Origin: Pavona decussata
Lineage: Eukaryota
Assembly: GCA_977016875.1 (NCBI GenBank)
Contig: CDRNST010000008.1
Coordinates: forward strand, 3,162,001-3,226,000
Length of the DNA stretch: 64,000 nucleotides
Direction of reading: 5' to 3'
Below the pieces are notes generated by a model. The model worked only from the letters and a program-made list of their open reading frames with translations, had not been told where the DNA came from and searched no databases. A program made the position numbers and the translations under genes. Numbering within the stretch: position 1 is the first letter of the stretch; every line of letters begins with the position of its first letter. Below are positions 15,176 through 63,454 of the stretch, in pieces.

Positions 15176-16268
15176 GTTATTATATGGCCGTGTCTCAAAA
15201 GGACTGGAAACGATCAAATTCAAGAACTTGATTGGCTAAAATCGATATTGACCGCGGTCTAGATTTTCCCATCTAGACCGATCTTTTGTCCTCAAAATGA
15301 TACAAACAAAAAAAGAAAAAAGAAAGAAAAATTGGCTTGTTCCTGTTAATAATACTACATTGAAGAACCAGTAACGCTAAACGTGGAAGCAGGTAAAGCG
15401 AATGAGAGCAAACGTTGGCAAATTTGAGTCCAGCCGAGCAAGCTACGAGCAAAGATGAAGTCGAAATTGAGAAGTTTTTGCAAGCGCAGCAATCCAAAAA
15501 CACTCAATACAAGACTGAGAGCGACTTAAACGCATGGAAGAAACTTTGTGAGTCACCGAAAGAGTCTAGAGCAATTGAAAAAGTCCTTATACCTACCCGA
15601 ATGAGCTCGACCTTCTTCCAAATTTTTTATCTCCGTTCGTAAACAAGATGGCACCGAGTACGAACCGTGTACATTGAGCGGCTTCCAGCGAAGTTTTCAA
15701 CGTCACCTGTATGAAAAAGGAAGCCTGATCAACATTCTTAAGGATAACGAGTTCTCCAAGTCCAGAGAGGTTCTTGTTACTAAACAAAAGAACCTGCTTC
15801 GCCAAGGAAAAGATAACCGTCCAAATTCAACAAGAGAGCTAACTGAAGCTGAAGAAGATGCACTGTTTGGAAATGGCCAGTTCGGTGTTCAGGATCGTAA
15901 ATCATTACAAAGGTCGCTTTTTAGAAAATTTTCATTGAGCCTGTAGGAAAAAAACGGTTATTTTGTCTTCATTCATTGACGAAGTTTGTACAAAGCTGTA
16001 CTTTGAACAGTTATTTTTGTCTCATTTGAACTGGAGACTAGTGACAGAAGTAAGCCAGCTAACTGCTTGAGCCCTCGCAGGGGAACAAGTATTTTTTTCC
16101 TTTTGATTTCCTGTTTGGCCATATAATAAACATCTTATTAACCGAGCTAGGTCGGTCTGTATGGGAGAATCTTGACCTCGGTCGCTGGTACAGACCTCAC
16201 TGCGTTCGGTCTGTACTGGTGACCTCGGTCAAGATTCTCCCATACAGACCTCCCGCTCGGTTAATAAG
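15176..16268 (+). mobile_element. Crypton-type (DUF3504/ZMYM-like tyrosine recombinase) element, internally deleted and frameshifted
   Basis: Peptides SKNTQYKTESDLNAWKK...VRKQDGTEYEP.TLSGFQRSFQRHL..KG..INILKDNEFSKSREVL..K.K.L.RQGK.NRPN..RELTEAEEDALF; ends gttattatatggcc and ggccatataataaac, then a terminal hairpin at about 16135-16268. Confidence 0.8.
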
Positions 16269-23690: not shown

Positions 23691-23749
23691 CAGATAATAT
23701 TGCCGCTCTCATCCACAAAGCTCATCAATGTATTGTTATTGGCATTGTT

Positions 23750-26700
23750 ATTTCATCGACGCGTTCAAAAAGAAGGAGAAACCGTGGAAGCTTTCGTCCG
23801 AAATCTCTACGAGTTGGCAGAACATTGTGAATTTGGAACACAGAGAGATGAGCAAATCAGAGACAGGATTGTTATTGGAATTCTTGACAAATCACTCTCG
23901 CAAAAGCTTCAAATGAAATCGGATCTCAATCTCGACACGGCGATACAAATGGCGCGTCAGTCCGAACTAGTAAAAGTTCAGGTTGCGGGCCAGTCCGATG
24001 GTAAGCATTTGGGAGAAGTACACCAAAAGAAAGGCAAACCGAATCCAGTAAGAAGACCAGCCCGTAATGACCGTAAAGTGCGTGACAAGAATCCTAAGAA
24101 CGTTCCGATGGTTCACCCTTGCTCTCGATGTAATTGCATACACAAACAAGATGAAACTTGCCTAGCGACTGGGAAGCGATGCCCTAGATGTCACAAAAAG
24201 GGCCATTTTGCTGCTGTGTGCCGCTCAGTGAGAGAGGTAATGTTCAATTCGGGTGGAATTGATCAGCAATTTTTCCTTGGCGCCGTTAGTTCATGCGATA
24301 AGTTCGAAGAGCCGTGGAGTGTTGTGTTACACATCAACCGGAAACCTGTACAGTTTAAGATTGATACAGGAGCCGACATCTCTGTAATCTCAGTCTCGAC
24401 CTATCAATCCCTAACTCCGCGTCCAAAGCTGAAGCCTTCAAATGCCATGCTGTCCAGTCCAGGTGGGATGCTGAATTGGAAAGGCCAATTTAAAGCGGAA
24501 ATCTCCCTTAAGGGCAAACAGTACTTTGTTGATATTTATGTTATTGAAGGATCATGTGTAAACAACCTACTCAGTCGTCAAGCAGCATGCCAGATGGGTC
24601 TAGTCCAGCGCATCGAAGAAACTACTGCTAATGTGTTTGGTGACATGGGTCTAATGAACTGTGAGCCAGTTAAGATTGAGCTCACCGACAATGCAAAGCC
24701 GCATTGTGTTAATTCTGCGAGAAAGATTCCATTTCCTTTACTTCCCTAAGTGAAAGAGGAGCTCGAGCGCATGTTGCAAGAAGGAATCATCGAGGAAGTT
24801 AACGAACCGACCGACTGGTGTGCTCCTATGGTTCCTGTTGCTAAAACCAACGGTAAAGTCAGAATTTGCGTCGACCTACGGAGATTAAATGAAGCTGTTA
24901 AAAGAGAAAGATACATTCTCCCGACCTTAGAAGATGTTGCTCCAAAGCTGGCTGGAGCCGAAGTATTTTCAAAACTGGATGCATCTAGTGGTTATTGGCA
25001 AATACCTTTACACCCAGAAAGCTGAAGGTTAACCACCTTCATCACTCCCAGTGGCCGTTTCTGTTTCCGCCGTTTGCCATTCGGGATAACCTCCGCACCA
25101 GAAATTTTCCAGAAAAGAATGACCAACCTTCTAAATGACCAAGAAGGTGTGGCAGCTATCCAGGACGACATTATTGTCTATGGTAGAACTGTCGAAGAGC
25201 ATGATGCAAGACTTCAGAAAGTGTTTGTAACCATCACAAAGTCTGGACTTAAGCTGAATGAGAAGAAGTGCGAAATCCGCAAGCCAAAGATATGCTACTT
25301 CAGAAATGTCATTAGTAAAGAGGGAGTCAGCCCAGATCCAGACAAAGTTAGAGCCATTCAGGAACTTCCAGCACCAAAGAATGTACCTGAATTGCGTCAG
25401 GTGCTCGGAATGATTAACTATCTGGGAAAATTCCTGCCAAACCTGTCAGATGTGATTAGCCCAATGAGTGTGTTGCTTAAAGCCGATAGTACCTGGAATT
25501 GGTCCCATCGCCAGAAGGAAGCTTTCGACAAGGTCAAAGCCATGATAACCACAGCGCCTGTACTAGCATTCTATGATGTAAAGAAACCGACAGTGGTCTC
25601 TGCAGACGCCAGCAGCTATGGGTTAGGTGGTGTCCTCCTACAGAAGCATGGTGAACAACTACGTCCTGTTGCATTCGCCTCCCGTACCCTTACTAATGCA
25701 GAGAAGAAGTATGCTCAGATCGAGAAAGAGTGCTTAGCGTCAGTATGGACATGCGAGAAGTTTTCCCGCTACCTATGTGGTCTTGAGTCGTTCCAACTGA
25801 TGACAGACCACAAGCCGCTAGTACCACTGTTTAATCATCAAGACCTTGATCGAGTACCCTTAAGGTGTCAGCGTCTTCTTATGCGCATGATGAGATTCAG
25901 GGCAAAGGCTCAACATGTGCCAGGAAAGCAACTAGTGGTGGCTGATACGCTTTCAAGAAATCCCTTCTCTGTCCCATCCGAGACATCTGACACAGAAGCA
26001 GAAGTCAGAGCCTATGTGGATGCAGCAGAAATGGTACGACCAGCATCACCTGAGAAGATGGAAAGGATCAAAGAAGCTACTTCTTCTGATCCTCAGCTGA
26101 GTCGTGTTCTGAATTATACTGCCAATGGTTGGCCAAAGTATGCTTCAGATGTACCAGAAGAAATCCGTCCTTATCATGCGGTCCGTGGTGATCTTTCAGT
26201 AACAGACGGCAAGGTCATCTATCGAAACCGCCTTGTTATACCTCCTGTCCTACAGTGTGAGGTATTGGAGCGTATCCATGATGGTCATCAGGGCATAACC
26301 AAGTGTCTTGAAAGAGCTAATTTGTCAGTTTGGTGGCCTGGCATTGGTCGCGACATCCAGAACAAAGTTTCAATGTGTGACTTTTGTCAAGAGAACTTAC
26401 CTACTCAGAGAAAGGAACCACTTATCACTACACCACTCCCAGAAAGAGCGTGGAAGAAGATTGGCACAGACTTATGCGAACACGAAGGGAAGCAGTTCCT
26501 AGTGGTTATTGATTATTATTCGAGATTTCCTGAGATAGCTTTCATGTCCAGCACCACCAGCGATGCCGTGATCAATAAGCTTAAGGACTTATTTGCCCGA
26601 TGGGGAGTACCAGACGAAATTGTCAGTGACAATGGTCCACAATTCTCTTCTGATCAGTTCCGCAAGTTTAGCCAAGAATATGACTTCAAGCATACTACCA

Positions 26701-27748
26701 CTAGTCCATATCATCCACAAGTAAATGGTCAATCGGAAAGTGGAGTTCGCATTGCCAAGAAGATATTAAGACAGCGTGATCCCTTTCCTGCACTTATGTC
26801 ATATAGAGCTACACCTCATACAGCCACTGGTGTAAGTCCTTGCCAGCTTATGATGGGAAGAGAAATTCGCACACTTCTACCTACTTTAGAATCCAACCTA
26901 AGGCCAGTTTTACAAAGCCAGGAAGCAGTTACCAGGAAGGATGAGGAAACGAAAGCTGCCTACCGTCAGTACTTTGATCAGAGACATGGAGTGCGAACCC
27001 TTCCTGACCTACAGCCAGGCGACTCAGTGCGTGTGAAGTTGGATCAGCAGAAAGGATGGAAGACGCCTGGGAAAGTCATTGCGAGAAGCCTTACCCCCAG
27101 GTCGTACGTCGTCCAGACACCTTTCAGCATGGTGCGTAGAAACCGTAGACACCTACGCCCAGCAACCAGTCCCAGGAGATTGGAAATACCTGATGAGCAA
27201 GATTTGGATCAAGATCCAGAGACACAAGCAGAAGGCCCAGGCTTGGAATCCTCACATGCTGAAGCAGAGCAATTACCGCAGATTGTGAAACCTTGTAAAG
27301 TGATCCCAACTGTACCCTCCTCTGCAGAAACACAGTCCAGTCTACCACAACCAGAAGTTAGGACCTCAAGTGGTCGTGTCGTTAGGAAACCTGTCCGCTT
27401 TAAAGACTCTGTTTAATCAGTGTTTACTTTTCTTTGAACTGTTATTGAGACATTGACTGATTAATATGCAAGGCACTAAGCCAGTTGCTATGTATATTTT
27501 CATGTTCACGTTTCGTATTCGCTAAGTCTTTAAGAGCTCAAAGGAGGGAGATGTCATGAGAGACTAGTTTTTGATGATGTTTGTTTATTCATGTATTGCG
27601 CATGTGCGTGAGTAGTTTCCCGGACCTCGTGGTGAGTTCAACCAAAAGTCGGAATGAAACGCGAAGATTGATGTACACTTAGGACCGGTCTAATTAAATA
27701 ATATTGTTCCTGTTTAAATGAGTGTTCACGTGTAGCATCAACTTGACA
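23750..27748 (+). mobile_element. Ty3/Gypsy LTR retrotransposon (Mag/K02A2.6-like), 5'-truncated; gag-pol with two premature stops (24747-49, 25023-25)
   Basis: Gag zinc knuckle CPRCHKKGHFAAVC, protease IDTGADISV, RT LDASSGYWQ...PFGITSAPEIFQ...IQDDIIVYG, RNase H ADASSYGLGG/YAQIEKE/TDHKPL, integrase HDGHQG..CDFC, DLC..SDNGPQF..SE; PPT and 3' LTR present. Confidence 0.95.
27552..27748 (+). repeat. 3' LTR (197 bp) of the Gypsy element
   Basis: Begins TGTCA directly after the polypurine tract aaaggagggaga (27540-27551) and ends TGACA; contains ATTAAA. Confidence 0.8.
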
Positions 27749-30130: not shown

Positions 30131-31485
30131 CGGTCAGTATGACTTGGGATAAAGCTGGGTTTTGCTACGGAGCTGTTTTTAATAGAAACCGTCAGGGCAA
30201 CCTCCCCTCAGTTGTGTCTTCGGCTTCGCTATGGGGTCCAGTCCACCTGTGTTCAACCCTTTGGACTCTGCTGAAACTCTCCTCGTACGCAGCGCAACAA
30301 AACATTCAGATTGGTTTAGCATTGATAAGTTATAATAAAGCAAAAATATTCTTATTATTATGGCTGACGGTTCATTAGTTTCACACCTAACTTTTTCCGT
30401 TGGCACAACATAAACATTGCAGGGATAATTTGAATGCTTGCGCCGTCCTTATTGGCGCTGTAAAGGATCCGTTCACCTAAGAAACAACTCAGATAAGGCC
30501 ATGTGTGCTACAAACCATCACAGACCAGATTTACTTTTTTTTAGATTTTATTTAAATACTTAAGTTCAAACTCATGGTTTCAAATAAAAAAGTCACATTT
30601 TCAAGCATTTGGAACGATTCATATGGCTTGTCGTTGATGATTAAGCGTACGTTTGCTTAATCAGTGATTTATGAATTGGATTAAGTCTGATCATGCGTTA
30701 AACAGAGAGCTTTGTTTTCGCTTTAAAGACTATAATTTGCCAGTCTTTCTGTTGAGCTATGTCAAAATAATGGCTTCATCCGTTAAAAAACTGTATCTTG
30801 ATGTATTTAAGGTTCCATATAAGTTTGATCGGCCTGTTTTTCTTTAACATTTGAAAAATGGAGAACAGTATTTGAGTTTAGTCAATGCTCAGCTCTAAAT
30901 CGTCTTCGTGTGTTTGGAATGATGCTTCTTGACCAGCTTACCCTGAAGACAAGCAAACAAGATTTAAATTAGACAAATTATTAAATTATGACGTCTTTCG
31001 GCATCACTAAAAAGTTATCAATAATATTATAAGGTATTTGGGTTCATGTTCGCTGTTATTCAAGAAATGTTTGTCATGTACAGGTGACATTAAAATGACG
31101 AGCACATGGTTTACCTTGTTCTATGCTTTGTGACCGTCCGAATATTACAATTTCTGGTGGCTAGGATGGCTTTTGTAATTTGTTGGTCAAATGGGGCATA
31201 ATGTGAATGGTAAAGTAGGTATTGCAGTAACATGAAGCGAGTGTTCCGGCGTTCCGGCTTTGATCAGGGTTGACGCTTACGGAGATCTTCGCAGTACGGC
31301 TGGCTTCTCGATGACCGAAATAAAACTTTTTCGATGAGTCAGAGAGACACAGTTCTCCCACATAGCATAACCTCTAAAATCAAATTGAGGGCAAATCAAT
31401 TGCTCAGCTGTTACTGAAGGGATTGTAAATCAACATGGAAGTTCACACGTTCGTGTCCACTGTTTCTGAAACGGAGTGCAACAAC

Positions 31486-33280: not shown

Positions 33281-34035
33281 TTGCCTCACATGACCCATCT
33301 CAATTGTTGGATAGGAATATATATATGGGTCCAGGAACCATTGTATTTTGGGGTTGGACTTTAAATTGGTGAAAAAATAATTGGCCCTGTTCAGGGTTTT
33401 AAAAGCCTTCACCGGGCATATCCTGTTTCCTTCACACGTGGTATGAAGAAGACACGAGATAACTACGCATAGGTTTATTTTTCTCTAAAGATGTAACGTG
33501 TAAATTTAAAAATACTTAAGATTATACTAGCCTTTTTATCTGATGCCTTTTTTTCTTCTGGCGGATGCTTATCAGGGAAAACACTCTTTCTGCTAGTAGA
33601 TTTGTTGTCTTGTGTTGTTTTCTTATGCTTAACATTGGTTTCATCCTTCTGGTGCGTCTTGGAACGCTGAGAAATTCGTAAGGAATATAATGAATTGGTC
33701 AGTGCATATAAATAATACTACGGCTCGTAATACTTACTAACATAGTTGTTAAGAAGTACAAAAAGCCCAGGCAATGTGGAATTAAAAAACATTTTCTAAC
33801 CATTGACGTTTTGGAGAATTATGTTAGTCATAATGAATGGGAGGTGATCTCGACAACTAGACTAGTTGTTGCGATATGGTAACGGATTCTACCAAATTTC
33901 ATATATGAAGATGTAGATGCTAATGTGAAAGACGAGGACTATTTAACAATTATTCCGCGAGGGCGCGTTTGATATGAGATAATAGTGAAAGTGCAATAAT
34001 TCTTTCACTAAAATCAAGCAAGAAATATTGCTGAT

Positions 34036-35496: not shown

Positions 35497-35950
35497 TAAG
35501 TACCATTACCGAAACGATAAGGGCCTGATTCAGTGTTGGTAGATATACAAAGTAAAACGTGAGGCTTAAATAGGCCATTCACGGATGTAGACTGGGTACA
35601 TGACAATGTCCGCACAGCAGAGGCTTAAACCAATATCTAAAGAAAAACTCTTTCAGTTAGTTGTGTTCGTCATTTTATCAGTAAGAAGTGTTAAGTTAAG
35701 GAGTTGTCAACAGGATAAAGTCATTACCTGACAGTCACTTGGTCTTGCTATTGTTGACTGTTTGAGGATAAAAGTAAGTCGCATGTCAGTCGGTACATGG
35801 TTTATTTTGTTTTTTGTAGGTTTTATGGTTTTATATTAGCAAGAAGCGTGTTGCGTTATATAAAGGATGAGTAGGTTAAATTATTTCAGTTTCAAGTGCC
35901 TGAGAAAAGACTGCTGGTGCAAATGTAAACAAATGGAATGCAACGCACTC

Positions 35951-38900
35951 TTATTTGTTAATACAAATGCAGCCATTGACTGAGTTTTTCTCATGCATCG
36001 GTGGTTCAAGTTTGTCAACGAACAGGTCTGATAGTATATACGACCGTCGTTTTAACCAGTAGAAACTTATAAGTAAATAATCATCTCTCTTGCTGTGCGG
36101 ACACTGACCTATTACTGAACCTCCGAGCTAAATGTGTAATTTTAAAGCCAAGGTATAAACTGATTGTGTGCTTGGCCTGGAACACTATTATTGCACCTTT
36201 TTCCTCTTAGCAACGAACGCTATCAATTACAAAACCCTCTGGGTAAATAATTTGGCAAGAGTAGCAGTATTAAAAAGGCTTTTAATTATGAACATCTTGA
36301 AATTGAGAGCAGCAAAAGTGAGTTGCAATTTCAAAATGGAAACTTCAAAGCCGCTGACCTTTTTAAACGCCATTTGTTGCTGTCCAAGATCGCCTCCGCC
36401 ACCCATGGCTTGGAGCCCCGTAAGTCCTCCACCTCCTCCTAGCATGCTTTGTAGGCCTCCTTGAAGACTTGCTCTCATTAAACCTTGCCCTTGCAGAGCG
36501 CTCATACCTCCACCATCGGAAAACATCCCAACTTGGCCTTGCCCTCCTGCTAGGGCTGATGGCATGCTTTGCATTCGTTGTATATCTTGGATACTTTGCA
36601 TTCCTTGAATTCCTTGAATTCCTTGAAGAGATTCTTCAGCTCCACCTCCGAGTCCCTCAGTCATGCGGCTAACTGGAGATTGACTCACTCCAGCGTCACC
36701 GCCCAAACCTGCTTGTCCCAAGGCCTCCTGACCCACTGCTCCTGCCTCCAAGGCTCCAAATCTCTCTGATCCTCCCACGGGGGCCTGTTCCATGGATGCC
36801 CCTTGACTTTGTTCACTTAGCTGTTGTCCCCCTTCTAAACCCCCAAAGACTCCGGCACCGCCACTTAATCCTTGGGTTCCCCGTGCTCCAAGACTTCCTA
36901 TGCCTATGTTGCTCTGTTGAGTGGCTCCCCTCATCTCGCCGGGCGATATTTTATCTGCTTGGTGTATGAGACTGGAGATCTCTGTAGGACAGTTTGGAAG
37001 GGAAAACATAGAAATGAGTTGCGATATTTTCACACACGTGGACTGCACAGATTCTCTTCGAAAACTAGGAGGCAGGATCCATAGGAGATCATATGAGACA
37101 CTTCGGCTCTTGCTAGGTTTTACCTGTACATACCGCAGGCAAAATGACTGTGAGATCAGAACGTCGAGTAAAGAGGACTATTTAAATATCGTGGAAACCG
37201 CGTCAGGAGAACCGTACGATCGTCATAACCACGAAGGATATTGAAACAGAAAACAGTTAGGGATCATAAGGGACCATGAAAATTTTTATTGTACAAACCA
37301 AAATGATATGTAGTCGCCAACGAGAGGCAAACAAACATAACAGTCGATCTTATACACAATGCAATGGAACTCCTCTAGAACCTGTGGCTCCGCCATGTTT
37401 AAGGTACAGTCAGCAAACGGTAGCCACGGGCAAAATATCCGATTTACAGAGGGTGACGAATTTTCGAGGGACAAAGTGTTCTTTACTGCAAGACGATCTT
37501 CACAAACTTGCGAGTTCACAGCCATTTGGCCCGCGGTATGTAGAAGTGAAAACATCCAAGACAGCGGCCATGGCGGCGTTCAAAGGGCTTCGTGGTTACT
37601 GAAGATGAGGCATTTAAAGAGAACAGTTTCTCATAGGTCAAATAGAACTCCCCTGGACCCTGGGAGCCTTAAAAAACACTTTAAACAAAGCGATTAAAGC
37701 GGGTAAACTATAACTGAAAAAAGTCCTCAGTGAAATAATCTTCCTCACGTTTGTTATATAAATAGATTGACGCTGGGAAGCAGGAATAATAGTGAGAGTC
37801 AGAAGCAGAGTATTAGCGTGTGAAACCAACCTGCATGGTCAACAGATGATTGATCAGATAAGTAAGGTGATGTAACGTCTTGAAATTCTTCTGCGTGGCC
37901 GGGGATTCAACATGCAGCCATGCAAAGAGAGTTAGAAGTTAGTTGAACGCGGAGGTATTCCAATTCAACATTAACTGAAGGATGAAAGGAATTAGTTTTG
38001 AATTGCTTTAGCAAGACCTAAAAAATAACAGCGGAGCTGATTTTGTGTCATTTAGGTAAAACTAGCCCTCAATTGGCCTAATGGTATTTTATGAAACTGG
38101 CCCTTAATTGGCCTAATAGTATATAATGAAAAGTGCTTAAAAAACTAAAGCTGTTCATAAAAAGAAGTTTCAGTGATAACCCTTTGATCAAAGTTAAAAT
38201 CAACAATTAGTCAACGGTGGTGAAAACCCTGAACATCTGCTTAGTAATGGCAAACTAATTTAATCCTCCGAAGCAGTCATCTAATATGATTTCCAGGCTT
38301 GAAATTGTTCTAGGCACCTTGCCTTTTCATTTTAATAGGCCTAGTAGTTGTTGGCTGTATATAATAGCTTACAAAGAAGAAATGTAGGGACACATTGGAA
38401 AGACGGCTCTCGATGCTTTGTCTTCTTGATTAATCTGATCAGCCTGAATATTCCTTTTCCTGAAGGATAGTTTGCCTTATATAAATGATGAGCAATTTGC
38501 TAATGAATTTTAAAATTTTGCTATGTAGCGATACTAATGACCATTTCTCCACAAACCTTGGTTCTCGGATGGACTGATGCTCTTCTGTTGTGCTCCAATG
38601 AATGCCATTGTTTGGCTCTCTCTCGCTCCTCCTTCAGGATTTGTGATTCTGGGTTGCATGGCCCCTTGCTCTTGAACCTATGCGTTATGGCAAGAAAGAA
38701 GTAGTCAAGTTAACATAATGAATAAACTCAAGTTGGAGTAGTGCCACGCAAAGGAAATCAAACCTTGCTTGCTTCGTTTCATAGCCGGACAACATCATTA
38801 GCTCTTAATTGCGGGTCGTCTTACAGTTTTTGTTCTCGATTGATTTTTCACTTAACACAAAACCACTGGAGATGCAGATATATACCTGTCCTCCATATGT

Positions 38901-41900
38901 TGGGCCAGTTGACTTTGTTTCTTTTTCAATTACAATTTGTTTTTGGAACAAAAGAGGTCACTCTTGCTTGCCGAGTAGACATAACAACACCTCTTAGTTA
39001 CTATAACCAAATACCAAAGACAACGACAAAGTAACTAAACAAAAGTAATGACCTGTACCGGTGATGCGGCTCCACCGACCACAGAAGCGCCTCCATTGCC
39101 AATGGAAGCGGTGCCACGAGACGATTGGGATTCAGCCGCGATGGCACGCTGGATCTCATCCAATTCGTGAGCACTTTCAGAAGCAACCTGGGCCTGGATG
39201 CTCTGTTTCTGAAAATGACACAATATCAAAACACTCTCTGAAGTGTACATGTATACTTGAATAATTAATTTTGAAGCTGGAATTATTCATTTGCTTTGAT
39301 TATAGGTCACGGTGACATCAGTTTCATGAGTTGAAATGGAATTTTTGCAATTATTCATAACTCATGAGATATTAAGCTAATTACTATATAGTAAAGGTTA
39401 TAGCGTGATGACCTAAAATAGTTTCTTAACTTGAAAAGGTTTAAACTTGAATATCTTCCAATACCTTCGGATGAAAAGTAAATTTTCTTTTACGGTTTGA
39501 ATACTTCCTTGTTAAAGCCTTCTCACGAAGCTTGTTTTTATTTTTCCTTCTAACAGTAAGTGAGGAAGCCTGACTTGTCATAAGCTTCGTGGTTTCTTTC
39601 AGGTTTTTTCGCCATTTATTTTCTTACATCAATTTTCTTTATTTTTTTCCATCTGTAAATGTTGTATATGGCAAAATAAATATTGTATTGTATTGTATTG
39701 TATAGTCACTAACTTTACTTTTGTAATGCTAGTAGTTCCTATCTAGCTGGATCCGTCATCCCCTTAGAAAGCTTATGATTCTGTTGAAAGCACGCAATCC
39801 AATTCAGACTTAATATAAACCAAATACATTCGTTGTCACCTTGACGCCCTGTCATCAGAAAAGAATAAGAAAGCCTGTAAGTGTATTTTCGTGTGATGTC
39901 TGACACCCACTGGCACAATATCTGGCTGGATGGCTAGCTGCTGTTGTAAGTCAACTTTCGTTCAATTTTTTTTGTGTGGTTGACGTCTTTGTTCCTTATT
40001 GGGTGACAACTATATGCAGCATCAATGCTGATGGATTAGATCAGATCTTAGTGGCACTCAGATAAGTATGTTCTCCGTTCCTATTTTTCAACCTATCATT
40101 GTTACCTCTGCAGCATCCTGCCTCTGTATGTTTGTGGCCCAGTTGACCCCCTTTACTCCATCATCCCACCCCGCTCCTCCTCCTCCTCCACCACCACCAG
40201 TGCCGTACCCCTCTCCTGTTTCGTATTTTTTCTCCTCCTCTGCCTGCAAGGCCAGGCGATCCTCTAATCTTGTGTCCTCCTTGTACTCATTGTTGCTTCC
40301 TCCGATATCACCCATTTCACCCAAGCTGAGCATCTTTCCACCAGGCTTTCGGTTCACTTTATGTTCCTTTACTCGCTTCATGTGACTCTCTTCGTCGTCA
40401 TCATTAACTGAAAAAAAAAATTATAAAGAAAATAAATAAACAGTACCCCGTGTCAAAGTTACGATCGTGATCAATTTTACCATACTTTCATCCAAGCTCT
40501 TTAAGATACAAGAGACAATATAATGATTTTGCTAAGCAAAACGTAGCATGCCACGAAAAGCTAAGAGTTAAAAAGTTAAAAAGGAAAGAAAAAATGAAAG
40601 CTTAAGAGATTCAACGTTACTCTGGTTAAAAAAGGTTTTACATGGCAAGCGTTTTCAAGCGAAGTTCTATCTCAGACATATTAAACAGAACTTTGCTAGA
40701 ATTTCAATAAGACAATTGAAACTATCAAGCGTGCCTAAAGGCGCATGCGTCCTGACGTGCAGGGTAAGCTTGTCATCCCCAGTCACGTGATCTGTGCTCC
40801 CTTCAGTGTGTTCAGATGACCCCTTGTTGCCCGTAACTCTTGCTTCAGCTTTATGTCCATGCCGCACTGCATCTTCAGCAGCAAGACTGGCGTCTAATTC
40901 AGCTCTTTGCACAGCTTCTTTTACTAAAAATACAAAAGCAAGCAGTCCTTTGGCATTTAGAATTGAGGGAACCATGCGATTGCGCTCTGAAGATTTTTTT
41001 CACTGTAATCTTTTGATCATCCGCCTGAGCATGACGTTAAATTTGGCCTATGCACTGAAAGGCTCCAGAGAAAACATGTTCGGGGCATAGAACAAAGAAT
41101 ATTCTCATGTTTTGTGAAATGGAAACGTTCTTTATTTTATCCATTATTTCTATGATGTTAAGAGTGAAACATGCAAGAATACCATTCAGATGAATCTATT
41201 TCTGACCTGTGTTTGTTTTCATAAAGCATGCAGATCTTACACAAAGCTGGACAAAATTAAACTTACCTTTATCTTCCAGATTTATTGACTTTGAATTCGC
41301 TCGGTACGCTATGAACAAATAAAGTGAAAATATTTTCACTTTGCTGGTATGTTTAAGAAAGATTGTACAGAGGGATTCTGTCGTTGTGGTTGTGTGAATA
41401 GAAATCAGTCCTTGTTAAAGCAACATATAAAGTCTTTTCATCGCATATTAATTTCCGTATGTTTATTGAGCAGAATTCAATAAATCTGGAAGTCCAACGT
41501 TATCTTTAAATCCCCTTCCCACCTTTCCCAAGCTCTAGCGGAATAATACCATTCTGAAGTACCCACCTTGTTCCTCTCCAGGCTTCTCAGACGAGTCAAG
41601 TGGAGCCGAGAACACTAAAGGGAACAAATATTAATGACAGTTTTAGGCTGTGTCCACACTATGCGGAATGGACTATTGTGCAGGCACAGAAATCTGTTTA
41701 GTGTATAAAAGAGTTCATACCATACCGGATTACCTTGGTACCACAGGAAATCCATGACGATTTGGTGTGGTCGGGCAGTCGGTTACTTGCTTACATTAAA
41801 CAAAAACTTAGAAAAGCTAAGCCATACAAAATGTTTCACCTTCTAGGCCAAAGCGATACTGAGGTGCTTCGGCACAGATATCGTGCCAGGTAATCAGCGT

Positions 41901-43275
41901 CAGGCTATGTGTGGCCAAAAGGTCTATCCGTTTTAGTTTCCTTTCCAGAAAAGAGGTGTCTCGAGTATGTAGCCTTAGCAAGAACGTAACAGACTAATAT
42001 AACACTTAACAAAAGGAGGCAGAGGAAAGAGACATGTCTCTGTATAAACACAGACCGCACAGACAGCAATATTGGATTTAATTGCTAACTTGTCGTTCCT
42101 TGTAGAGAACTATCAGTCTTAAAAATCAAATATCATTTCCAATGCTTTAACAAGAGACGAGATCCAGTCCAAAAAGGACCGTAATCCTGCCTTCGACCAA
42201 TTTTCTCCAGTAAAATTTCTAATCTGATTAGGGAATCTGGAACAACGTTATTTTCCGATCTGATTCCCAAATCCCAGGCGAAGAATTGTATTTCAGCTTG
42301 AGAAGTTTTCAGCCAGAATCGTCACTGAGTCTGCATTCGAAAATCTGTACATTTCAATTATCAAGCTATCGGGTATCTCATTTTGAAGAATCTTAATGGA
42401 TTTTGGTTATGGAAAGTGGGATGTCCGTCAATTTTCAAAGTGTATCCGTCCATCCTTGCTTCTTGTTCAAAACACAACGCTCAGTAAGTACTATAGCATA
42501 CGAGATAGAGTAAATTAACGAACACATTTTGACATTTGTCCAGGATTTAGCATATTTTGTTTCTACTAGCTGCACATTAAACGAACATCCAATTGAATGC
42601 TATTGTTTCACTCATAGCATTTATTACTGAATCAGACATACACTGTATTGCTTCTACTCATTTGAATTTAATTTTATCTCAGATTTTACTGTATCCGTTC
42701 TTTCATTGCTTGTTGCTCAAAATACAACGCTCTGTAAGCTTTTCCGCATACGAGATAGAGTAAATTAACGAACACATTTTGACATTTGTCCAGTTTTATT
42801 TCTCCATGCAAAACGCACAATAAGGACAACGATTGAGTTTAATCATGTAAATTTATGACCTCACTGGAAATCAATCAAGACATTGCTACTAAAAACCCGG
42901 GAAAGATAATTCTTTTGTTAAACACCAACACCAACCTAATCCTTTTGGGAATCAAAAGTGCAACCAAAAACAAGGGATTTTAGGAATATGTTTTAAGTCA
43001 AGTTCGAGTTTATCATAAATCATCAGCAGTTATCATATGCTTTTTTCCAATAAACAGCCAAAACATTATACTAGACACCACCCGATCAAAATAGACAGCT
43101 GAATTTCATCTGTTGTGACCTTGCCTGAAGCACAGCATGGTCGTAAGATAAATATACCACGCTTTGGCCAGTAAGGCTTGTATCAGTCTTACTCTACAGC
43201 CATTTGTTGTATCCATATCTCACCTGGGTGCGACAAACATAATGCCAAGCACGTTAGAAGAAGTCTACTGTTCAT
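35951..43275 (-). CDS. Gene A: secreted Gly/Gln/Glu-rich low-complexity protein, about 530 aa; coding exons 43275-43224, 41614-41567, 41308-41267, 40923-40735(?), 40407-40106, 39208-39059 (or 39053), 38677-38557, 36954-36359, 36127-36109, 36027-35951
   Basis: Signal peptide MNSRLLLTCLALCLSHP|VFS-APLD. Splice phases chain 1,1,1,1,0,0,1,0,1 with pyrimidine-rich acceptors and an open frame to ...NGCICINK*. AATAAA at 35806-35801; probable 5'UTR donor near 43655. One donor (40735) must be GC. Confidence 0.75.
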
Positions 43276-44530
43276 CCCACGGCGTTTCCTTGTTCGCTAT
43301 TGTTTATTTATCACGAATTTGTACCTGTTAAGAAAACGAGAGAAATTTACCACCAAGATTTATAGTTGTTTAGGAAAGCAACGGCTGTTTCTTTGCCAAA
43401 GATACACATAAATAACAAGAGATAGCTTCTAAGTTCAAGGCAACTTCTTGGTGACTGTTAAGGAAAGACGAATGGAAGAATGTTGCCGTCTTTATGAAGT
43501 CTTCCACACTAGGTAGATTAACAACGGCAGGTCTTTTTTTTACTTTGTTTGTAATAACGATCCATTGTTTATAAATTTAAGCTTGTTTTGCCCGACAAAA
43601 CATTAATTTCGTCCACATAAATCTGTGAATGAAGAAAATTTCAAAAGGACTTACCGTTCAAAACATGAAAATTACGGATAGAGAGGACTCGGAAAACGTT
43701 TCCTACTTGGTCATTTCCAATGAATGACGTCATAAGGTTGAAGAAGTCTTTTAAACTAAGACAAGATTAAATATTTACCACTGCCTTCAAAGCCCATGGA
43801 GCCCAGAGATGATCAGTTCTGATTCACAACTGGAAAAGGGAGAAGGCCAAAAAAGATTGAGTTATTTTACCTAGCAAACTTAAAATGTTAATTGACGTAA
43901 TTACTTTTATTGTGCCATATATTTCCCGTTTATATGCTTCAGGTACGTTTAACTCTGCTCAGTGTATCGTGGTTTCTCACCTGCTAACTTTAAAGACTTG
44001 ACTATTCTTGTAGATAAACTTATGTACTGCTTTATCACGTTGGGACAAAGACTGCAGGAAAGTGAAGCGAGTGAGCGAGTGACCGGTTATGAATCATGTA
44101 ATGCAAACTTTGTCATTTAGGGCGAACTTCTGTATTTTGTTTGTTTGTTTGTTCGTTCGTTCGTTTAGAGAAACTGGTTATAGAAAATTAGCGCTACTAC
44201 TAAAGGTATCTAAAATTACCGTGAACTGTTGAAAACCTAGTTTGAAATAAAAACTACGACGTCATTCGCTTCGTTGTTTTGTTGTCCCATTACTGATCAT
44301 GTGACGGTACTTTAGGGAGTAGTCCCTTTTAGAATTGGTCATATACAGGCTGGCATACATTCTTTACTTCCAAAAAGACAAAGGTTCAATTCTCCTGAGA
44401 ATATCACATTGTTGTAATGGTCAATTAGCATATAGAGCGAATAAGGTCTAGTAAGTTGGATTTTTGAGTTTTTCTTTGATTTAATGGAGCGCTATCTTCC
44501 TATTTAAACTGAATAGAGTGAATCACAAGG

Positions 44531-45270
44531 CATATTTAAGAATTGGTTCATGCTAGCGTGCGTATATCGAGTTGTGGATGCACGCTAGAAGTCTGGAGAG
44601 CACGAGAGAAGCGTAAGAGTTGCTCAAGGCGTAGCCGAGAGCATCTCAAGCTTCTTGAGTGCTCTCCAAACTTCTCGCGTGCATCCATAACTCCATATAT
44701 CACACTGCATATTAAAGAATTGGTTCATGCTTAGCGTGCGTATATCGAGTTGTGGATGCACGCTAGAAGTCTGGAGAGCACGAGAGAAGCGTAAGAGTTG
44801 CTCAAGGCGTAGCCGAGAGCATCTCAAGCTTCTTGAGTGCTCTCCAAACTTCTCGCGTGCATCCATAACTCCATATATCACACTGCATATTAAAGAATTG
44901 GTTCATGCTTAGCGTGCGTATATCGAGTTGTGGATGCACGCTAGAAGTCTGGAGAGCACGAGAGAAGCGTAAGAGTTGCTCAAGGCGTAGCCGATAGCAT
45001 CTCAAGCTCCTTGAGTGTTCTCCAAACTTCTCGCGTGCATCCATAACTCCATATATCACACTGCATATTTAAGAATTGGTTCATGCTTAGCGTGCGTAGA
45101 TCGAGTTGTGGATGCACGCTAGAAGTCTGGAGAGCACGAGAGAAGCGTAAGAGTTGCTCAAGGCGTAACTGAGAGCATCTCAAGCTTCTTGAGTGTTCTC
45201 CAAACTTCTCGCGTGCATCCATAACTCCATACACGCACAGCTAAAAGCATGAACCAATTCTTTTATAACA
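44531..45270. repeat. Tandem array of four near-identical 178-bp palindromic units
   Basis: Unit aagaattggttcatgc...gagttgtggatgcacgctagaagtctggagagcac...gtgctctccaaacttctcgcgtgcatccataactc; ORF echoes at 44624, 44802 and 44980 give period 178; the last unit ends with the full inverted arm gcatgaaccaattctt. Confidence 0.95.
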
Positions 45271-45840
45271 TAGTGACAACAAATTAGAGCGCAGAAAACA
45301 GGTTTTATTTGTGATTGATTAAAAAATTCTCTCAAGGAGCTGTGCATATAAACAAAGGTTATTATTGGCTGGTTACAAACACGCCACAATGGTATGGTCT
45401 GAACGAGAATGTTTCATCTGAAATTGTAAATAAAAAGTCAATGAAAATGTAGACAAACGAGTTTCCAAGCCCACAGAATGTATTTAAAGTACTCATTTGC
45501 TCATTTGTTTAATCAAAGTTAAAGGCTTGAACTAGGCTTTCGAGTCATCACGGTGTTTACGTACAGTTGGAGAAGACTCAATTCCAAAAGAAAAGTCCGG
45601 TAGTTTTCCACTACTTTCGTTCATTTCTGGGGAAACTTTGTAAAAACTAAGCGACGGAAACCCAGGTTTGTCTGATTTGCACACGTCATCTTATGGACGC
45701 ACGGCCGTGCGTATGTTCAGAAATGTACCATGCTGACGCCAATATGAATTAGATAGGGAAGCACGGTCGCTATGTTATAATGTTCAAGGTATGGTTTTCT
45801 CACCTGTCCTTACATCGAAAATGGCAAAACATCGTAAATA

Positions 45841-46096
45841 AATGAATCAATCAATAACCTTATTTACCTCGGGGCCGAGCATTAAACTTCACAATCCAAT
45901 AACTTCAATTAAAAATTGATAACATTGTTAAACATCCCACTGCAGGAGGCACACCAGCTCGTTATTTACAAGCGCAGGCGAGAAGTTGCACTCGGGGTTA
46001 CCGAGAAACAACCCCAGCTAGCAGTCAGAGCGGGACTTGAATCTGGGACCTCCGGATTTCAAGTCCGGTGCCTTAACCAGTCGACCACGCTGCCTC
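45841..46096 (-). mobile_element. tRNA-derived SINE
   Basis: Minus strand starts aggcagcgtggtcgactggttaagg (A box) ... ggacttgaaatcc ... cagattcaagtcc (B box-like), then a core and a short (ATTG)n tail. Confidence 0.75.
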
Positions 46097-46140
46097 GTAC
46101 ACTTGCAGTCCCACATAAGAGAAGCCTGAAATTGAACACC

Positions 46141-46450
46141 ACATGTCTTGTAATTCTACCAATTTAACTGATATGATTGACTGCAAAAAATGTAACAGTG
46201 TATATGAGAAACAAAACGCACACTTCGCGAACTGTTGCAATTCACCGAACATAAGCAAGCCATCAACAATCCACGTCACGCCCACTGCGGTACCTTCTCA
46301 TCTCAGTACACCAGGACACTCCACAATAGATAAAGAGACTGAAATTGTTACCTCCCGACTGAAAGCAAGAGAAGCACACCTTAAATTTTTAGAGCCGTCA
46401 TATTTTTGTCGCTCCTTCTCTGTACCAGTCGAAATATCGACCTATCTGTT
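46141..46450 (+). mobile_element. Decayed GIY-YIG (Penelope-like) fragment
   Basis: SCNSTNL..MIDCKKCNSVY..ETKRTLRE (frameshifted) ... SRLKAREAHL. Confidence 0.55.
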
Positions 46451-48336
46451 GTACTAGCCTTGCAGTTTTGTGTTTCGTAACACCTGTACTCTTAGGGGGC
46501 CCAAAAACAGCTCCTTCGAGAAGCAACGAACTGATAAAAATATTGAAGTCACTGAGGCGTGTACATCTGTTTCCTTCTTATCACAAACTCTCTATAAATT
46601 ATCTCAAGGTGCAGAGATGAAACTAACGGCCTGAACTAAGCATAATGTGTGTTATCAGTATGTGTGCGTTGAAATTTATGAAGTTGAGTTTAATATCAGT
46701 TAAATAATCCCATGACCATTCTTTACAGATAATTTTAAGGAGATTGACAAAGTTAACGAAAACCCAAATAAACTTTCAATGTTTTGTTTAGAGGTAATTA
46801 AATTAACACCATCGGATCGGAACTGAATTGAATGCGAGTTTACATGGTATTCCTCCACTCAAATGACTTCCACTAAATAAGAAAATAGATCGTTGTAAAG
46901 TGATACACATTTCGTTTCATCGTCCCTGTTGTGTCAGTGAGGATTCACCAGAAGCCGGTATACGTGCTAAGGGCTTCCGACCGTAAAACAAATCATTTCT
47001 ACGATGATGTATGGCCATGGAGAGAGGGCGAGGTTTAATGTGAAAGTAATTTTCATTGGTTCTTCAGGAGAGCAAAATATTTGTCGAATTAGCCAAGGAT
47101 TAGGCGACCCGTGGAAAATCATTTGTCGAGTGCCGATCGAGCATGCATTTCCAGTTCGTAAGAATAATTATAGGCAAGATCCATCTATCTTAAGTCAATC
47201 AATTACTTAGAATTAACCAGCTTAAAATCATAAAAATTACTCCTGGTTAGGATTTGGTAATGGTGAAAAGTTCTTGGTTAGAGAGAAAAGCGGGTTTTAA
47301 AGTTCGAATCTGATTTTGGTACCTATTCGGTTGATGACAAGTACAATTTACCTGCCGATCTTTAGCTTGGAACGCTGTCCTACAAGACAAGCTCGTTATG
47401 ACACTCCCCCAATTCATAGCGCATCAAATGGGAAAACGTGCAGCTGAAAGTTTTTTAAAGTTCAGTTTAATAAGGAAAACACAACCCAGTGTATTTAAAC
47501 TACAATGGGAATAAGGCCGGGACAGGAGAAACCTGCAGTGTGGAACTAAACCAACAAGTGGCTCGTGTTGGTGGCAAAACATTACGTCATGAATGCAACG
47601 AGGATTCAATGTTGCCGGTATGTCGCGAAATATAAGAGAGAAAAGCACAGTTTACGTTAGAAAGATTTCTGTAAGATAACGACTTCTTCTTTGGACCAAG
47701 TAAAGGTAAGTTAAGGTATTTAATTTCTTGTATAATTGAGACCACTGCTCTCCTTTACAGGTGCCCTAAAGTGTTGGATTCCATTTCCTCTTTATCGTTC
47801 AGTGTTTTAAGTACGGATCATGGAGTTGAAAATCTTTTACTTTAATTATTTACCCGCTGGGTTTCACTTTTAGAAGTTACAAACCTCTCAATGTTAGTTT
47901 GTTTAGATTTTTGCGTTTTGACTAATACTCGTAATCTATAGTTATCTTAACATAAAAAAAAATCACTTCAGTTTTTGGTTGCAGTCTGAAGGCGGTATCT
48001 CTTTTCAGTTTAGGGAAGGATATAAGCTGCACACAATGATTTCCTGATAATGAAGTGGATGTTAATAACGGCTGTAATTGTTTGTGTAGAAGCGGTCACC
48101 GCGGGTAAGCTAAAATTAACTTTCTACGCCTCATTGATCTTCTGTATTTAAACCCCTTCGTTTGTCACAGTATTTGAGATAACAGTGTTTAGTTTTAACA
48201 GGTAGTAAATTGATTGAATTTGGGTCAGTAAAACGTTTTCTATCTGCTATTTTTCGTTCACTAAACTCGTTCGCCAAAACTACTCTTAAGAGTTATTTCC
48301 CACCTCTATATTTTCTCCATAGCGGGTCAAAAATGG

Positions 48337-60800: not shown

Positions 60801-60936
60801 TTGTAGTTTTCATGTCATCGAAAACCATGTGCGTACGCTTCATTAAGTTTATTGCCAAAATAGCCGGTACCAGCTTATTACCTGTCAACAAACCCACTGC
60901 TAAAAGCAGAGAAAGGACAACTGGACGATTTCGCAT
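54880..60936 (-). CDS. Gene B: secreted Gly/Met-rich low-complexity protein, isoform 1, about 591 aa; exons 60936-60882, 59653-59627, 59460-58744, 56623-56594, 55826-54880
   Basis: Signal peptide MRNRPVVLSLLLAVGLLT|DVSDG-RPPK. All introns are phase-1 GT-AG; total 1776 nt in frame. The last exon has (GGM)n, an acidic EEDFKDDEMEVDNDNDDDDNDDE block and a Lys-rich tail; AATAAA at 54795-54790 and 54587-54582; upstream UTR donor near 61040. Confidence 0.8.
55990..56520. mobile_element. About 530-bp fold-back MITE in a gene B intron
   Basis: Long inverted arms: atcccaacggcggaggtgacga...ggctagaataactgaaatatatttgtt...tttcggtttgcaatacaaacctt versus aaggtttgtattgcaaaccgaaa...aacaaatatatttcagttattctagcc...tcgtcacctccgccgttgggat. 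Confidence 0.85.
56739..57872. mobile_element. Non-autonomous Crypton-like repeat with internal inverted duplication
   Basis: Starts taattactcaggtgattata...aaaatggccgc, ends gagcctgaggcgagtaattgttaaata; inverted duplication catgctggaaataaagaaact...ttttgctcgaaagtaatttgttg (56970-57030) versus 57138-57182. Family assignment is from recall. Confidence 0.5.
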
Positions 60937-63454
60937 CTTCTTCAATTCCTCGCTGATAAACGAAAGAGGAAAAAAAAATACAGCCATGTAACTTTTACAA
61001 AAAGGCACAACATCTATAAACTAATAAAACTGGTCTTACCAATAACGTCAACCACGTTATGCAGACCACGGTTTCTAAACTGCTACTAAAGGAAAATAGC
61101 ACAATAGCATCTGTGTGACAAGCCAATACATCCTTGGCCTTAATGAATGACTGCATAAAGAACACAGACTTAAAAGTACAGGGGATGGAACTAATCTGTT
61201 ATTGTTTCTAGAAAATGTGAATACGCAACTGATTATACGTGCATTCGGTTCCCGTTAATGTTTGTATTTTATCAAATACCAGGTATCTCCCCTCACAAGT
61301 TTTATGCTATTGACTAGTTGATAGTGAACCTCCTATTTACTGTAACGTTCATATGATCTTCGATATTTGCAGTGTCTCGGGCGTTGGTTTGTTTTTCCTT
61401 TTTAAAAGAAACTTCTGATAAATCTTGGCAGGTATTAACAATATTATCACCATAGACGCTCAAAATATAACCGTAGCTAAAACAATTATCTAATCTTAAT
61501 TAAGAACAGTCAATGTAAATTACGAGAGTAGAAATGAAAGAAAATCCTACCTGAGACTGAATACATGGCGCTAGTAACTTACCTTTAGGATGGAGAACTG
61601 TTAATGATATTGGTCAAATACATTTGCGCCAAGCCACAAGACCGTAAATTTAGCCTGTTGATGTAAGAATAAGATATTTTGCTAACCCAGATGATGAATT
61701 TCAAGTTTTTTGCCATTAAATATTTAAAACTTTAGCAAAAAATATTTCTCTCTCTGTTGCTAGGACACAATAGCAAAGATGTCTACTTTCTCAGATTAAA
61801 TGAGCCAAATATGACTTCTATGTCTATGAGCCATTCATGACTGGGAACTTCTTTTCTTGAAAAAAGGTTTTTAAGCGTAAAGGGATCAAAGGTCTTAATA
61901 CTCCGCTTTGTTGACTGATTAACTAACAAATCGAATCTTTAAGTTGTGCCAAGGACTCGTATTATAAGGTTATTGAACACAGACATGGCCCTTTTGGCAG
62001 CGCAGTGGCCATATGAGCTAATTCAATGCAACAGACATTCAAACCGGAATAGAATGTTTATGATCTAATGTGACCTTTCAAGCTTGTGAAAGGTTACGAA
62101 GACGCAGTTGGTTCTTAATCACGGAGGTGTAAAATAGGTTGCCACTCCCAGTTTGTTTTATTTTCATCAAAATTGTAAATAATTGTGTTTAACCAAGTGT
62201 GTGATACCTAAGCGGATCAGGAAGATCTTCGCCGGTTTGCCCATTGGTTTTCTTTTCTTTTTTTTTTTTCTTTTTCTTTTTGAATCGCTCGAAAGAAGTT
62301 TTGCCATTTCATCTGAACCTTCTGTTATTAAAATTTTATTTAATACAGTGAACTTTACACAATTATTCATGTGTTAATATAATATATTTTTTAAGTTTTA
62401 GATCTATTTATTTATTGTTTTCATTTTACACACTTAAACCTCTTAGGAACCAATCATTATTTATCCCGCCTAGGGAGGTTTGGAGGATTTTGGTATGAAA
62501 CCAGGTTAAAATATTTGATCCCTTCTCAAACAGCTTTGTTATTTTCATGCACCCCAAATGGACACTATAATTCCCTGAACACCACCCTCTCACCACTTCG
62601 TTCCTGAACACACTAATCATTACTACCCGTTTGATTTTCCACGGTTCAGTAAATCCTTTCCGTGTTTCCAGTTTATAATTCACAAATATTGTATAATTTA
62701 CAGTTGAGAGAACCTATTTGACACTGGAGTCAACAAACACTGTTTTTCGAGCTCGGGTCATGTTAATTTGTAAATAATTTACTGAGTTAAAATAAACTAT
62801 ATGTCTACGTCCATGCCTGTGTAAGACGCAGAAAAACTCTGGAACGAGCCTACGCAAGCTAGGGTTCATGAGAAGGACAAAGACAAATGCATGATTTCAA
62901 ACCGTGCTAGGAGGACCGGGAGGTGCTCCAGTTAAATGGTTGGTATAAGAAACCTGCATGGCAAGTCCTCTTAAATTTATTAACCTACGGAAATGGTTAA
63001 AAATTCGGCGTGAACCTTATCATCATACTCAGTACACGATGAAAACAAATGAGCTCAAATGGGCTTTTTTTTTGGGGGGGGGGGGGGTGTCGCTTTATTT
63101 TGAGATGAGAGGGTTTAGCTAAGACTACCCCTTTCTAGTCTCAGCTAAACTCCCTACGCTCCACTCTGGGATAGAAATAATGAATGGTCCCTTAACGAGC
63201 TTTTATTAAGGTCCTCGGTGCTGCGTGTATAAATAAAAAAACAACAACAGAGCAAGGGCATTTTATCCTTATTTAAATTTACATATGGTGCAGGGATTGG
63301 TTCTTTGTGTGCTGCAATTGTAGAATTCAATGGCATACGGTAAGTACGCATTCTCAGGCCCTTACGCGCACTTGTTAATTTCCAGCGAGAGGAAAGATCG
63401 CCTTACGACATACCCAGCCCAGCCCAGCTAGTTCCCAGTTGGCTTGATAGCTCA

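Follow-up and report, generated by a model that had tools for sequence, protein, structure and literature searches.

An ancient hexacoral block of genes for signal-peptide proteins of no described family in the coral Pavona decussata

We analysed a stretch of 64,000 nucleotides (nt) from the coral Pavona decussata (GenBank assembly GCA_977016875.1, contig CDRNST010000008.1, positions 3,162,001 to 3,226,000 of the forward strand), here called the window, and found that three neighbouring genes in it, A and B on the minus strand and C on the plus strand, are real. Our preferred reading, to which we assign a probability of roughly 55%, is that the stretch holds three single-copy, expressed or constrained coral genes of an ancient hexacoral block, and that their products are secreted, self-associating proteins for a soft-tissue secretory product. 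Gene B is established by spliced contigs, and genes A and C by transcripts or proteins of other corals, exon models on canonical splice sites, and ratios of non-synonymous to synonymous substitution (dN/dS) of 0.09-0.19, which were computed against related corals and are rough, synonymous sites being near saturation. The assembly, of 602 Mb, has one copy of each. The DNA of the window is eukaryotic, rich in AT and free of N; its minus strand holds three large open stretches in which Gly, Met and Gln abound (36.2-37.2 kb, 53.6-54.4 kb and 54.9-55.9 kb) and a less repetitive one at 58.6-59.6 kb. An earlier interpretation made from the letters of the DNA, the sequence-only reading, had described A, B and C as a cluster of orphan secreted-protein genes. 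Its observations were partly confirmed: they are largely right after two boundary corrections, and 'orphan' gives way to 'hexacoral-wide, uncharacterised', as orthologues of each are present throughout stony corals and also in a sea anemone.

That gene B is a spliced gene was confirmed by the joints in RNA-type contigs. Logan contigs of four runs from four studies, placed on 54950-60949, yielded the joints 60882>59653, 59627>59460, 58744>56623 and 56594>55826. The last three were seen directly and read CT..AC on the plus strand, that is, GT..AG for a minus-strand gene; 58744>56623 was found in four runs and 56594>55826 in three, while the joints flanking the 27-nt exon were obtained from 25 intervening letters in one X1 contig together with loose ends in X10. 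Among public runs, 14 were found by word search to contain 19-31% of the words of 53.5-61.0 kb, which is about the share expected from the exons alone. After fitting to GT..AG, the gene has five exons of 55, 27, 717, 30 and 944 nt, separated by introns that are all in phase 1, and its product has 591 residues; the sequence-only reading had this model right in detail.

Exon 1 of gene B (60882..60936) carries the ATG and the signal peptide MRNRPVVLSLLLAVGLLT and ends in phase 1 at the donor GTAATA; X1 and X10 contigs end or join at 60882, and the exon is conserved in locus L003 of another coral. It is followed by the 27-nt micro-exon 2 (59627..59653, phase 1 to 1), which has AG/GT flanks and is represented by the X1 contig letters between 60882 and 59462 and by the loose ends in X10. 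Exon 3 (58744..59460, 717 nt), covered by contigs of all four runs, is acidic and rich in Ser and Asn, and includes a conserved helix, KIRSLQTSIHKNLLRLFHKLK, and the motif DPYAAIAAGPDHPKLPPDLK. It has 28 homologues and a dN/dS of 0.17-0.19, and an AlphaFold model built with 14 sequences (predicted template modelling score 0.18) showed a single confident helix over the conserved basic amphipathic motif and low-confidence coil in the remainder. Exon 4 (56594..56623) is a 30-nt micro-exon, again phase 1 to 1, with joints on both sides in RNA contigs. The last exon of isoform 1 (54880..55826, coding to 54883 and then stop) is covered by RNA contigs, the assembly of which breaks within the repeat. 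The encoded sequence opens with a helix-like lead of Gln and Met, which gives way to the (GGM)n core; then come a Tyr/Arg/Pro segment containing DEPAVGRDKVPLGY, a block of poly-Asp, DDGYDAPYDRKTKIAKV and, before the stop, a tail rich in Lys. The core is 42% Gly and 29% Met, the block that follows is 25% Asp and the tail 35% Lys; dN/dS for the (GGM)n exon is 0.14-0.17. The protein as a whole contains 12.6% Gly, 9.5% Asp, 8.7% Lys, 7.7% Met and no Trp, with 91 acidic and 78 basic residues and two Cys in the 587 residues counted.

Downstream of this exon, at 53553..54340, lies a tandem duplicate (28% Gly, 17% Met, with MNDMPGG repeats and a basic tail) that is in frame from a phase-1 acceptor and is a candidate alternative last exon. 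The duplicate is present in L001, L002, L003 and the Stylophora locus L006, that is, in all corals examined, and absent in Nematostella and L009, so the duplication arose after those lineages split off. The duplicated unit reaches back into the preceding intron and includes its 3′ end (CHYNLI versus CHYIID). Within the introns of B, at 55900-56950 and 58150-58620, all four runs showed short high-depth contigs with many loose ends; these probably stem from repeats that are transcribed at other places in the genome and do not belong to B. Upstream of B, a block at 61389-61724 is conserved in two other corals at 66% (L003) and 78% (L002) nucleotide identity and is a candidate regulatory element.

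Gene C, on the plus strand, encodes 150 residues in four exons (55, 63, 39 and 293 nt) that are separated by phase-1 introns only. The sequence-only reading had proposed four exons, which holds, but had placed the first of them at 48337..48382 (MMYLAVVIYIIFSLT); to this exon the N-termini of orthologues match weakly (42% identity, E = 16), and its donor, GTTTTC, is weak. The same N-termini match 48050..48104 at 53-67% identity (tblastn), where the signal peptide MKWMLITAVIVCVEAVTA ends in phase 1 at the donor GTAAGC. The gene thus most likely starts at 48050 and not at 48337, judging by these alignments, and the exon at 48337 is probably a degenerate duplicate of exon 1. Exons 2 and 3 were placed by orthologue mapping: exon 2 (49333..49395, 63 nt) encodes ..MLKREIKIDRRSPWEY and puts a KR site directly after the signal peptide, and exon 3 (50495..50533, 39 nt) encodes AMLKYLLGNPKGN and has the donor GTAAGT. 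Exon 4 (50939..51234) encodes the conserved core of about 95 residues with two Cys, ends in LQIKG and a stop, and is 69% identical to the protein of the coral locus L002 and about 55% to that of Nematostella; in the same coral, L002, exon 3 of gene B is only about 44-51% identical. Its dN/dS is 0.09, and the alignment of C has 39 invariant columns, the two Cys among them. A word search with this exon reported 23 relatives, including annotated proteins of 148-152 residues, named 'uncharacterized' or 'hypothetical', from Montipora capricornis, Orbicella faveolata (LOC110051140), Desmophyllum pertusum (OS493_006792) and Stylophora pistillata (LOC111328405 = XP_022788565.1). Intron 2 of C holds a palindrome-like element at 49446-49850, with open reading frames (ORFs) for near-identical peptides on both strands (..SGKSQT[IV]GDFT..) and no Pfam match, which is probably a small transposon.

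With 33 basic against 15 acidic residues, the product of C is basic; it has a short pro-piece that ends in KR. In every species examined its C-terminus is of one type, with Gly, Gly-Lys, Gly-Arg or Gly-Gly in corals and PREGR in Nematostella. C-terminal Gly, with or without Lys or Arg, is the usual signal for C-terminal amidation, and from this ending we expect that the protein is probably amidated.

Gene A was modelled by mapping spliced orthologues, taken from RNA contigs or annotation, back onto the window. It covers about 12.4 kb of the minus strand, from 43275 to about 30.9 kb, and so extends beyond 35951, where the interval of the sequence-only reading began; its product has about 500 residues. 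The orthologues used were P0038 (474 residues), P0092 (520 residues) and P0087 (540 residues, Porites lobata CAH3176242.1), together with P0035 (334 residues), an N-terminally truncated orthologue whose Lys-rich tail guided the placing of the 3′ exons. Exon by exon, the intron phases are 1, 1, 1, 0, 0, 1, 0, 0 and 0, with phase 1 found only at the 5′ end and after exon 6.

Exon 1 of gene A (43224..43275, 52 nt) encodes the signal peptide MNSRLLLTCLALCLSHP and ends in phase 1; it is 81% identical to P0038, and exon and promoter are conserved in L004. Orthologue mapping placed the 48-nt micro-exon 2 (41567..41614, VFSAPLDSSEKPGEEQ), the 42-nt micro-exon 3 (41267..41308) and exon 6 (38557..38677). 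Between exons 3 and 4 lies an optional cassette exon of 201 nt (40723..40923, KEAVQRAELDASLAAEDAVRHGHKAE..), which is found in P0087 and P0092, not in P0038, and is 82% conserved in L004. Exon 4 (40106..40407), present in a single copy and 64% identical to Nematostella, encodes an acidic stretch, KRVKEHKVNRKPG, YKEDTRLEDRLALQAEEEKKYE, a Gly run and NWATNIQRQDAAE, and exon 5 (39059..39208, KQSIQAQVASESAHELDEIQRAIAAESQSSRG..) is the most conserved stretch of the gene (82% identity to Nematostella, 83% to L009 and 94% to Orbicella). A further possible optional exon, EEFQDVTSPYLSDQSS, with the approximate ends 37844..37891, matches P0035 only and is conserved in L004. Exon 7 (36359..36981), with 22 homologues and a dN/dS of 0.16, encodes the Gly/Gln/Ser/Met-rich core (26% Gly, 14% Gln), which has no Cys. 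It is followed by a 30-nt cassette exon (35728..35757, STIARPSDCQ) that is found in P0035 and lies within a 61-nt stretch 95% identical to L004, and by the Lys-rich tail exon (33532..33666, RSKTHQKDETNVKHKK..), which matched the tails of P0038 and P0035 by tblastn (E = 3e-6 and 7e-4) and is conserved in L004; the 3′ end of this exon was inferred, and its donor would be GC. The probable last exon (30895..30942) encodes GKLVKKHHSKHTKTI and then a stop, matches the C-terminus of P0035 and is 83% identical to L004 in nucleotides. Thus the signal-peptide exon, the 48- and 42-nt micro-exons and the large Gly/Gln exon of the sequence-only reading are borne out by P0038, P0087 and P0035, but its 3′ end is not: an ending in CxC near 35954, reached through a 19-nt micro-exon, is unsupported, as the orthologues go from the big exon to the 30-nt cassette and then to the Lys-rich tail. 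The product contains 17% Gly, 10% Ser, 10% Gln, 59 acidic and 48 basic residues and, after the signal peptide, no Cys; its acidic lead ends in a conserved KR, before VKEHKVNRKP.

In all three genes a phase-1 intron closes the signal-peptide exon, and all three carry dibasic sites, both as had been seen in the letters of the DNA. The spliced models were queried exon by exon in the homology searches. Pfam returned no family for the exon ORFs and P0038 (E up to 1) or for the full-length P0080 and P0087 (E 0.1), and PDB sequences gave no match below E = 0.07 to profiles of B and C or to the A orthologue P0087. These results, with the low AlphaFold confidence, agree with the sequence-only reading that no globular domain can be recognised; A and B, made up largely of disorder-promoting residues, are mostly disordered, and the assignment of A, B and C to signal-peptide proteins of no described family is supported. 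For C the highest ESM Atlas score was 0.83, no better than chance, and A gave no usable match. When a profile of B exon 3 was run against 1.84 billion cluster representatives, 12 proteins came up at E <= 0.001, one of them from Nematostella vectensis. Source names for members are 'uncharacterized', 'hypothetical', 'predicted', 'unnamed protein product' and 'MLP1 homolog' only. Full-text literature gave no match for XP_032241488, XP_001635863, EDO43800, A7RXM2, LOC111328405, LOC110051140, XP_022788565/6, PFX26895/6/7 or presumed accessions of neighbouring genes; the supplement of a Nematostella matrisome paper had no accession or peptide match, three small supplementary files of the Stylophora cell atlas had no match, and literature terms for spirocysts and Met-rich proteins gave no cnidarian result.

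The genes are part of an ancient hexacorallian block that is older than the split of stony corals and sea anemones, and not lineage-specific to corals as had been supposed. Its fourth member, gene D, starts 272 nt past the window end (G000:C8:3226272-3228663; L008 272-2663, minus strand), upstream of B and on the same strand. Gene D has a signal-peptide exon, MRKLSLILIFFLPIIPAFHS, with the phase-1 donor GTAAGA, and a Lys/Gln/Asn-rich open frame of 718 residues with no Pfam match; it is 41% identical (E = 1e-26) to the Nematostella gene directly upstream of B, which encodes 595 residues and likewise has a signal-peptide exon closed by a phase-1 intron. With the direction of transcription, the order of the block is D>, B>, <C, A>. 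The Nematostella vectensis genes are found at OW051986.1:17,151,500-17,167,400. In the Nematostella locus L005 D lies at 7108-9154 (+), B at 10001-13007 (+), C at 13605-15773 (-) and A from 19515 (+); C, with 158 residues, is on the opposite strand and about 55% identical, and the exons of A are 64-82% identical. Nematostella B (XP_032241488.2 / EDO43800.1, P0080) has the complete architecture of isoform 1, in the order signal peptide, KIKDLQSSIHRNLVKLFHHL, DPYAEIAASPDHPKLPP, Gly/Met core, DEPAVGRDVVPLGY, poly-Asp block and DDGYGAEYDRKTKIAKV. L009, which is about as distant as Nematostella, likewise has all four genes, with order and orientation preserved. The Stylophora locus L006 carries A, C and a gene B that has the two last exons (the Stylophora genes lie on LSMT01000116.1, around XP_022788565.1), the Orbicella locus L007 has A and two copies of C, and L002 has both B and C; in Desmophyllum, B (locus tag 006790) and C (006792) are two locus tags apart, and three ENA assemblies each hold two or three of the block genes on contigs of identical length. 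Conservation of the linkage had been set beforehand as a test by the sequence-only reading, and the arrangement B>, <C, A> was indeed found in Nematostella, Stylophora and other coral assemblies.

An explanation that needs no shared function is that the genes are real and functionally unrelated, and are adjacent since hexacoral genomes rearrange slowly. A and B, which we had considered as possible paralogues and rejected as such, have no significant similarity (E = 0.39) and may for that reason be functionally unrelated. Eight promoters, from the four block genes of the window species and of Nematostella, had no word in common but the A-rich AAACAAA, which we treated as low-complexity noise. 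Yet the four genes keep order and orientation in lineages where exon 3 of B is only about 31-51% identical, and all four have the same 5′ design of a signal-peptide exon closed by a phase-1 intron. We regard such passive linkage as a real possibility, if an unlikely one.

Under our preferred reading of a soft-tissue secretory product, the proteins of the block would enter the secretory pathway and be trimmed at basic sites. The blocks of B are an acidic N-terminal part with one conserved basic amphipathic helix, the Gly/Met core, the Tyr/Arg/Pro segment, poly-Asp and the Lys-rich tail, and those of A are the acidic lead, highly conserved short motifs, the Gly/Gln/Met core and the Lys-rich tail. 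A and B may be described as putative self-associating polyampholytes, in which oppositely charged blocks and flexible Gly/Met(/Gln) cores would condense the proteins in secretory vesicles; on release they could form a hydrated elastic or adhesive matrix. The most likely site would be a secretory product of soft tissue that corals share with anemones, for example mucus, a cnida or a granule of gland cells. The interpretation offered by the sequence-only reading, a putatively co-expressed secretory module, is partly supported, in that the secretory nature and the conserved linkage stand.

Several points weigh against this reading, among them the dissimilarity of A and B, the promoters with only an A-rich word in common, and the slow rearrangement of hexacoral genomes, by which the block order may be passively kept. 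RNA of the window species was obtained for gene B only, from runs classed as RNA by guess, a classification that the spliced joints bear out. Signal peptides of the block genes were called by eye and not by a predictor, and the AlphaFold model of C is all-helical and of low confidence (predicted local distance difference test 46.7). Both the site of action and the condensation mechanism were inferred from sequence alone.

The sequence-only reading had also raised, as the first of its options, a skeletal organic matrix, for which the block would be a cluster of the calcification toolkit. Biomineral matrices typically contain secreted proteins of low complexity and acidic blocks rich in Asp, and, as far as paper titles and term counts tell, Met- and Gly-rich proteins occur in mollusc shell proteomes. 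However, Nematostella, which does not calcify, has the complete block, poly-Asp of B included, and the skeleton is thus unlikely as the primary site. No source names any member as a skeletal matrix protein, within a word search of proteins that was limited by length range and left the full-length A and B proteins in NCBI outside it. We consider this explanation very improbable.

A regulated-secretion module was also weighed, in which C is an amidated, peptide-hormone-like signal and A and B form a granin-like granule matrix of neural or gland cells. The C-terminal Gly of C (with or without Lys or Arg), conserved from corals to Nematostella, and the KR after its signal peptide fit such a module, as do the acidic, disordered nature of A and B with their dibasic sites and the conserved basic amphipathic helix of B. 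The stretch DDGYDAPYD of B, with Tyr amid acidic residues, is one that we presume to resemble sulfation sites and counted on the same side. However, there is no Pfam granin match, the dibasic sites lie mostly in the Lys-rich tails and not between peptide units, and (GGM)n cores are not a granin feature. Moreover, the protein-atlas look-alikes of C, small vertebrate secreted proteins and hormone precursors among them, scored 0.75-0.83, again at chance level. Such a module appears decidedly unlikely to us.

The lineages of corals and of sea anemones parted hundreds of millions of years back. That four secreted genes that belong to no known family have been kept in order, orientation and architecture points to a shared, still unnamed hexacoral secretory product. 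The combination of a rare Gly/Met-rich core with charged blocks is a design relevant to elastic and adhesive biomaterials and to secretory-granule biology, and the presence of the block in Nematostella makes the question directly testable in a laboratory model. The genes also drop off the list of coral-specific calcification candidates.

Other features of the window lie outside these genes. Between A and C, at 44522-45231, four copies of a 178-bp tandem repeat (97% matches) are the source of repeated minus-strand ORFs of 85 residues. An element of about 410 bp at 52429-52840 matches L003 and L004 in both orientations, at 79-81% and about 70% identity, and looks like an inverted-repeat element of the miniature inverted-repeat transposable element (MITE) type common to these species. 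On the plus strand, a Ty3/gypsy-type long terminal repeat retrotransposon with aspartyl protease, reverse transcriptase, RNase H and integrase domains occupies 23700-27416, and a single-exon ORF of 624 residues at 12742-14616 belongs to the MFS_1_like family (E = 5e-56) and represents an MFSD6-like transporter gene.

Among known systems, the elastomer of the Hydra nematocyst, cnidoin, bears on a cnidocyst explanation of the block, by which A and B, and perhaps C and D, would be material of a stinging or adhesive capsule, possibly the hexacoral-specific spirocyst, with their cores acting as elastomer or adhesive. Cnidoin is rich in Gly and Gln and contains Met at 17%; it carries a signal peptide and a long propeptide with KR at its end, and is built of QMQGCGQQXP repeats with Cys, flanked by minicollagen Cys-rich domains (PMC4321713). 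A and B resemble it in composition, being secreted and disordered with a Gly-rich repetitive core and unusually high Met. A KR ends the acidic lead of A and the short pro-piece of C, but none is found near the N-terminus of B, and cleavage at these sites is putative. The named relatives of B, found through 12 cluster representatives, are all hexacoral, and none comes from a named medusozoan; this restriction, however, is that of the named matches of one profile search, in which several matches had no taxon name. In contrast to cnidoin, the repeats are GGM and MNDMPGG in B or irregular in Gly, Gln, Ser and Met in A, all free of Cys, and minicollagen-type Cys-rich domains are absent. With no Cys in mature A and two in B, the disulphide linkage that defines capsule-wall proteins is impossible. 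The likeness to cnidoin is thus one of composition only; the sequence-only reading, in naming cnidoin among its models, does not hold for membership of that type, and the wider cnidocyst explanation seems unlikely to us. A narrower variant, that D-B-C-A is a co-regulated unit for the material of a hexacoral-specific secretory organelle, for example the adhesive tubule threads of spirocysts, would make the Gly/Met cores a Cys-free elastomer or adhesive, unlike the disulphide-linked wall of minicollagen and cnidoin; we put it forward as an improbable speculation.

The (GGM)n repeat itself is known from the C-terminal tail of GroEL, and literature matches to the GGM string were only GroEL papers and one unrelated Schistosoma proteome paper. 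In GroEL the repeat has about 13 residues and sits on a folded, cytosolic chaperonin, whereas in gene B it spans about 100 residues of a secreted protein, and this likeness, too, is limited to composition.

Granins, which condense in granules, share with A and B the acidic, disordered, secretory character and the dibasic sites, and here it is the neighbouring gene C that carries an amidation-type C-terminus. Unlike granins, A and B have Gly/Met cores and Lys-rich tails, and they do not match the Pfam granin family (PF01271). In the vertebrate SCPP cluster, whose genes code for enamel, dentin, milk and saliva proteins, introns are in phase 0 and the genes descend by duplication from a single ancestor. 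B and C, in contrast, have phase-1 introns throughout and A has introns of mixed phase; no similarity links A, B, C and D to one another, and the existence of the block in Nematostella leaves it with no link to mineral. What the hexacoral block has in common with the SCPP cluster is its organisation, a tandem array of genes for secreted, low-complexity, disordered proteins that begin with small 5′ exons.

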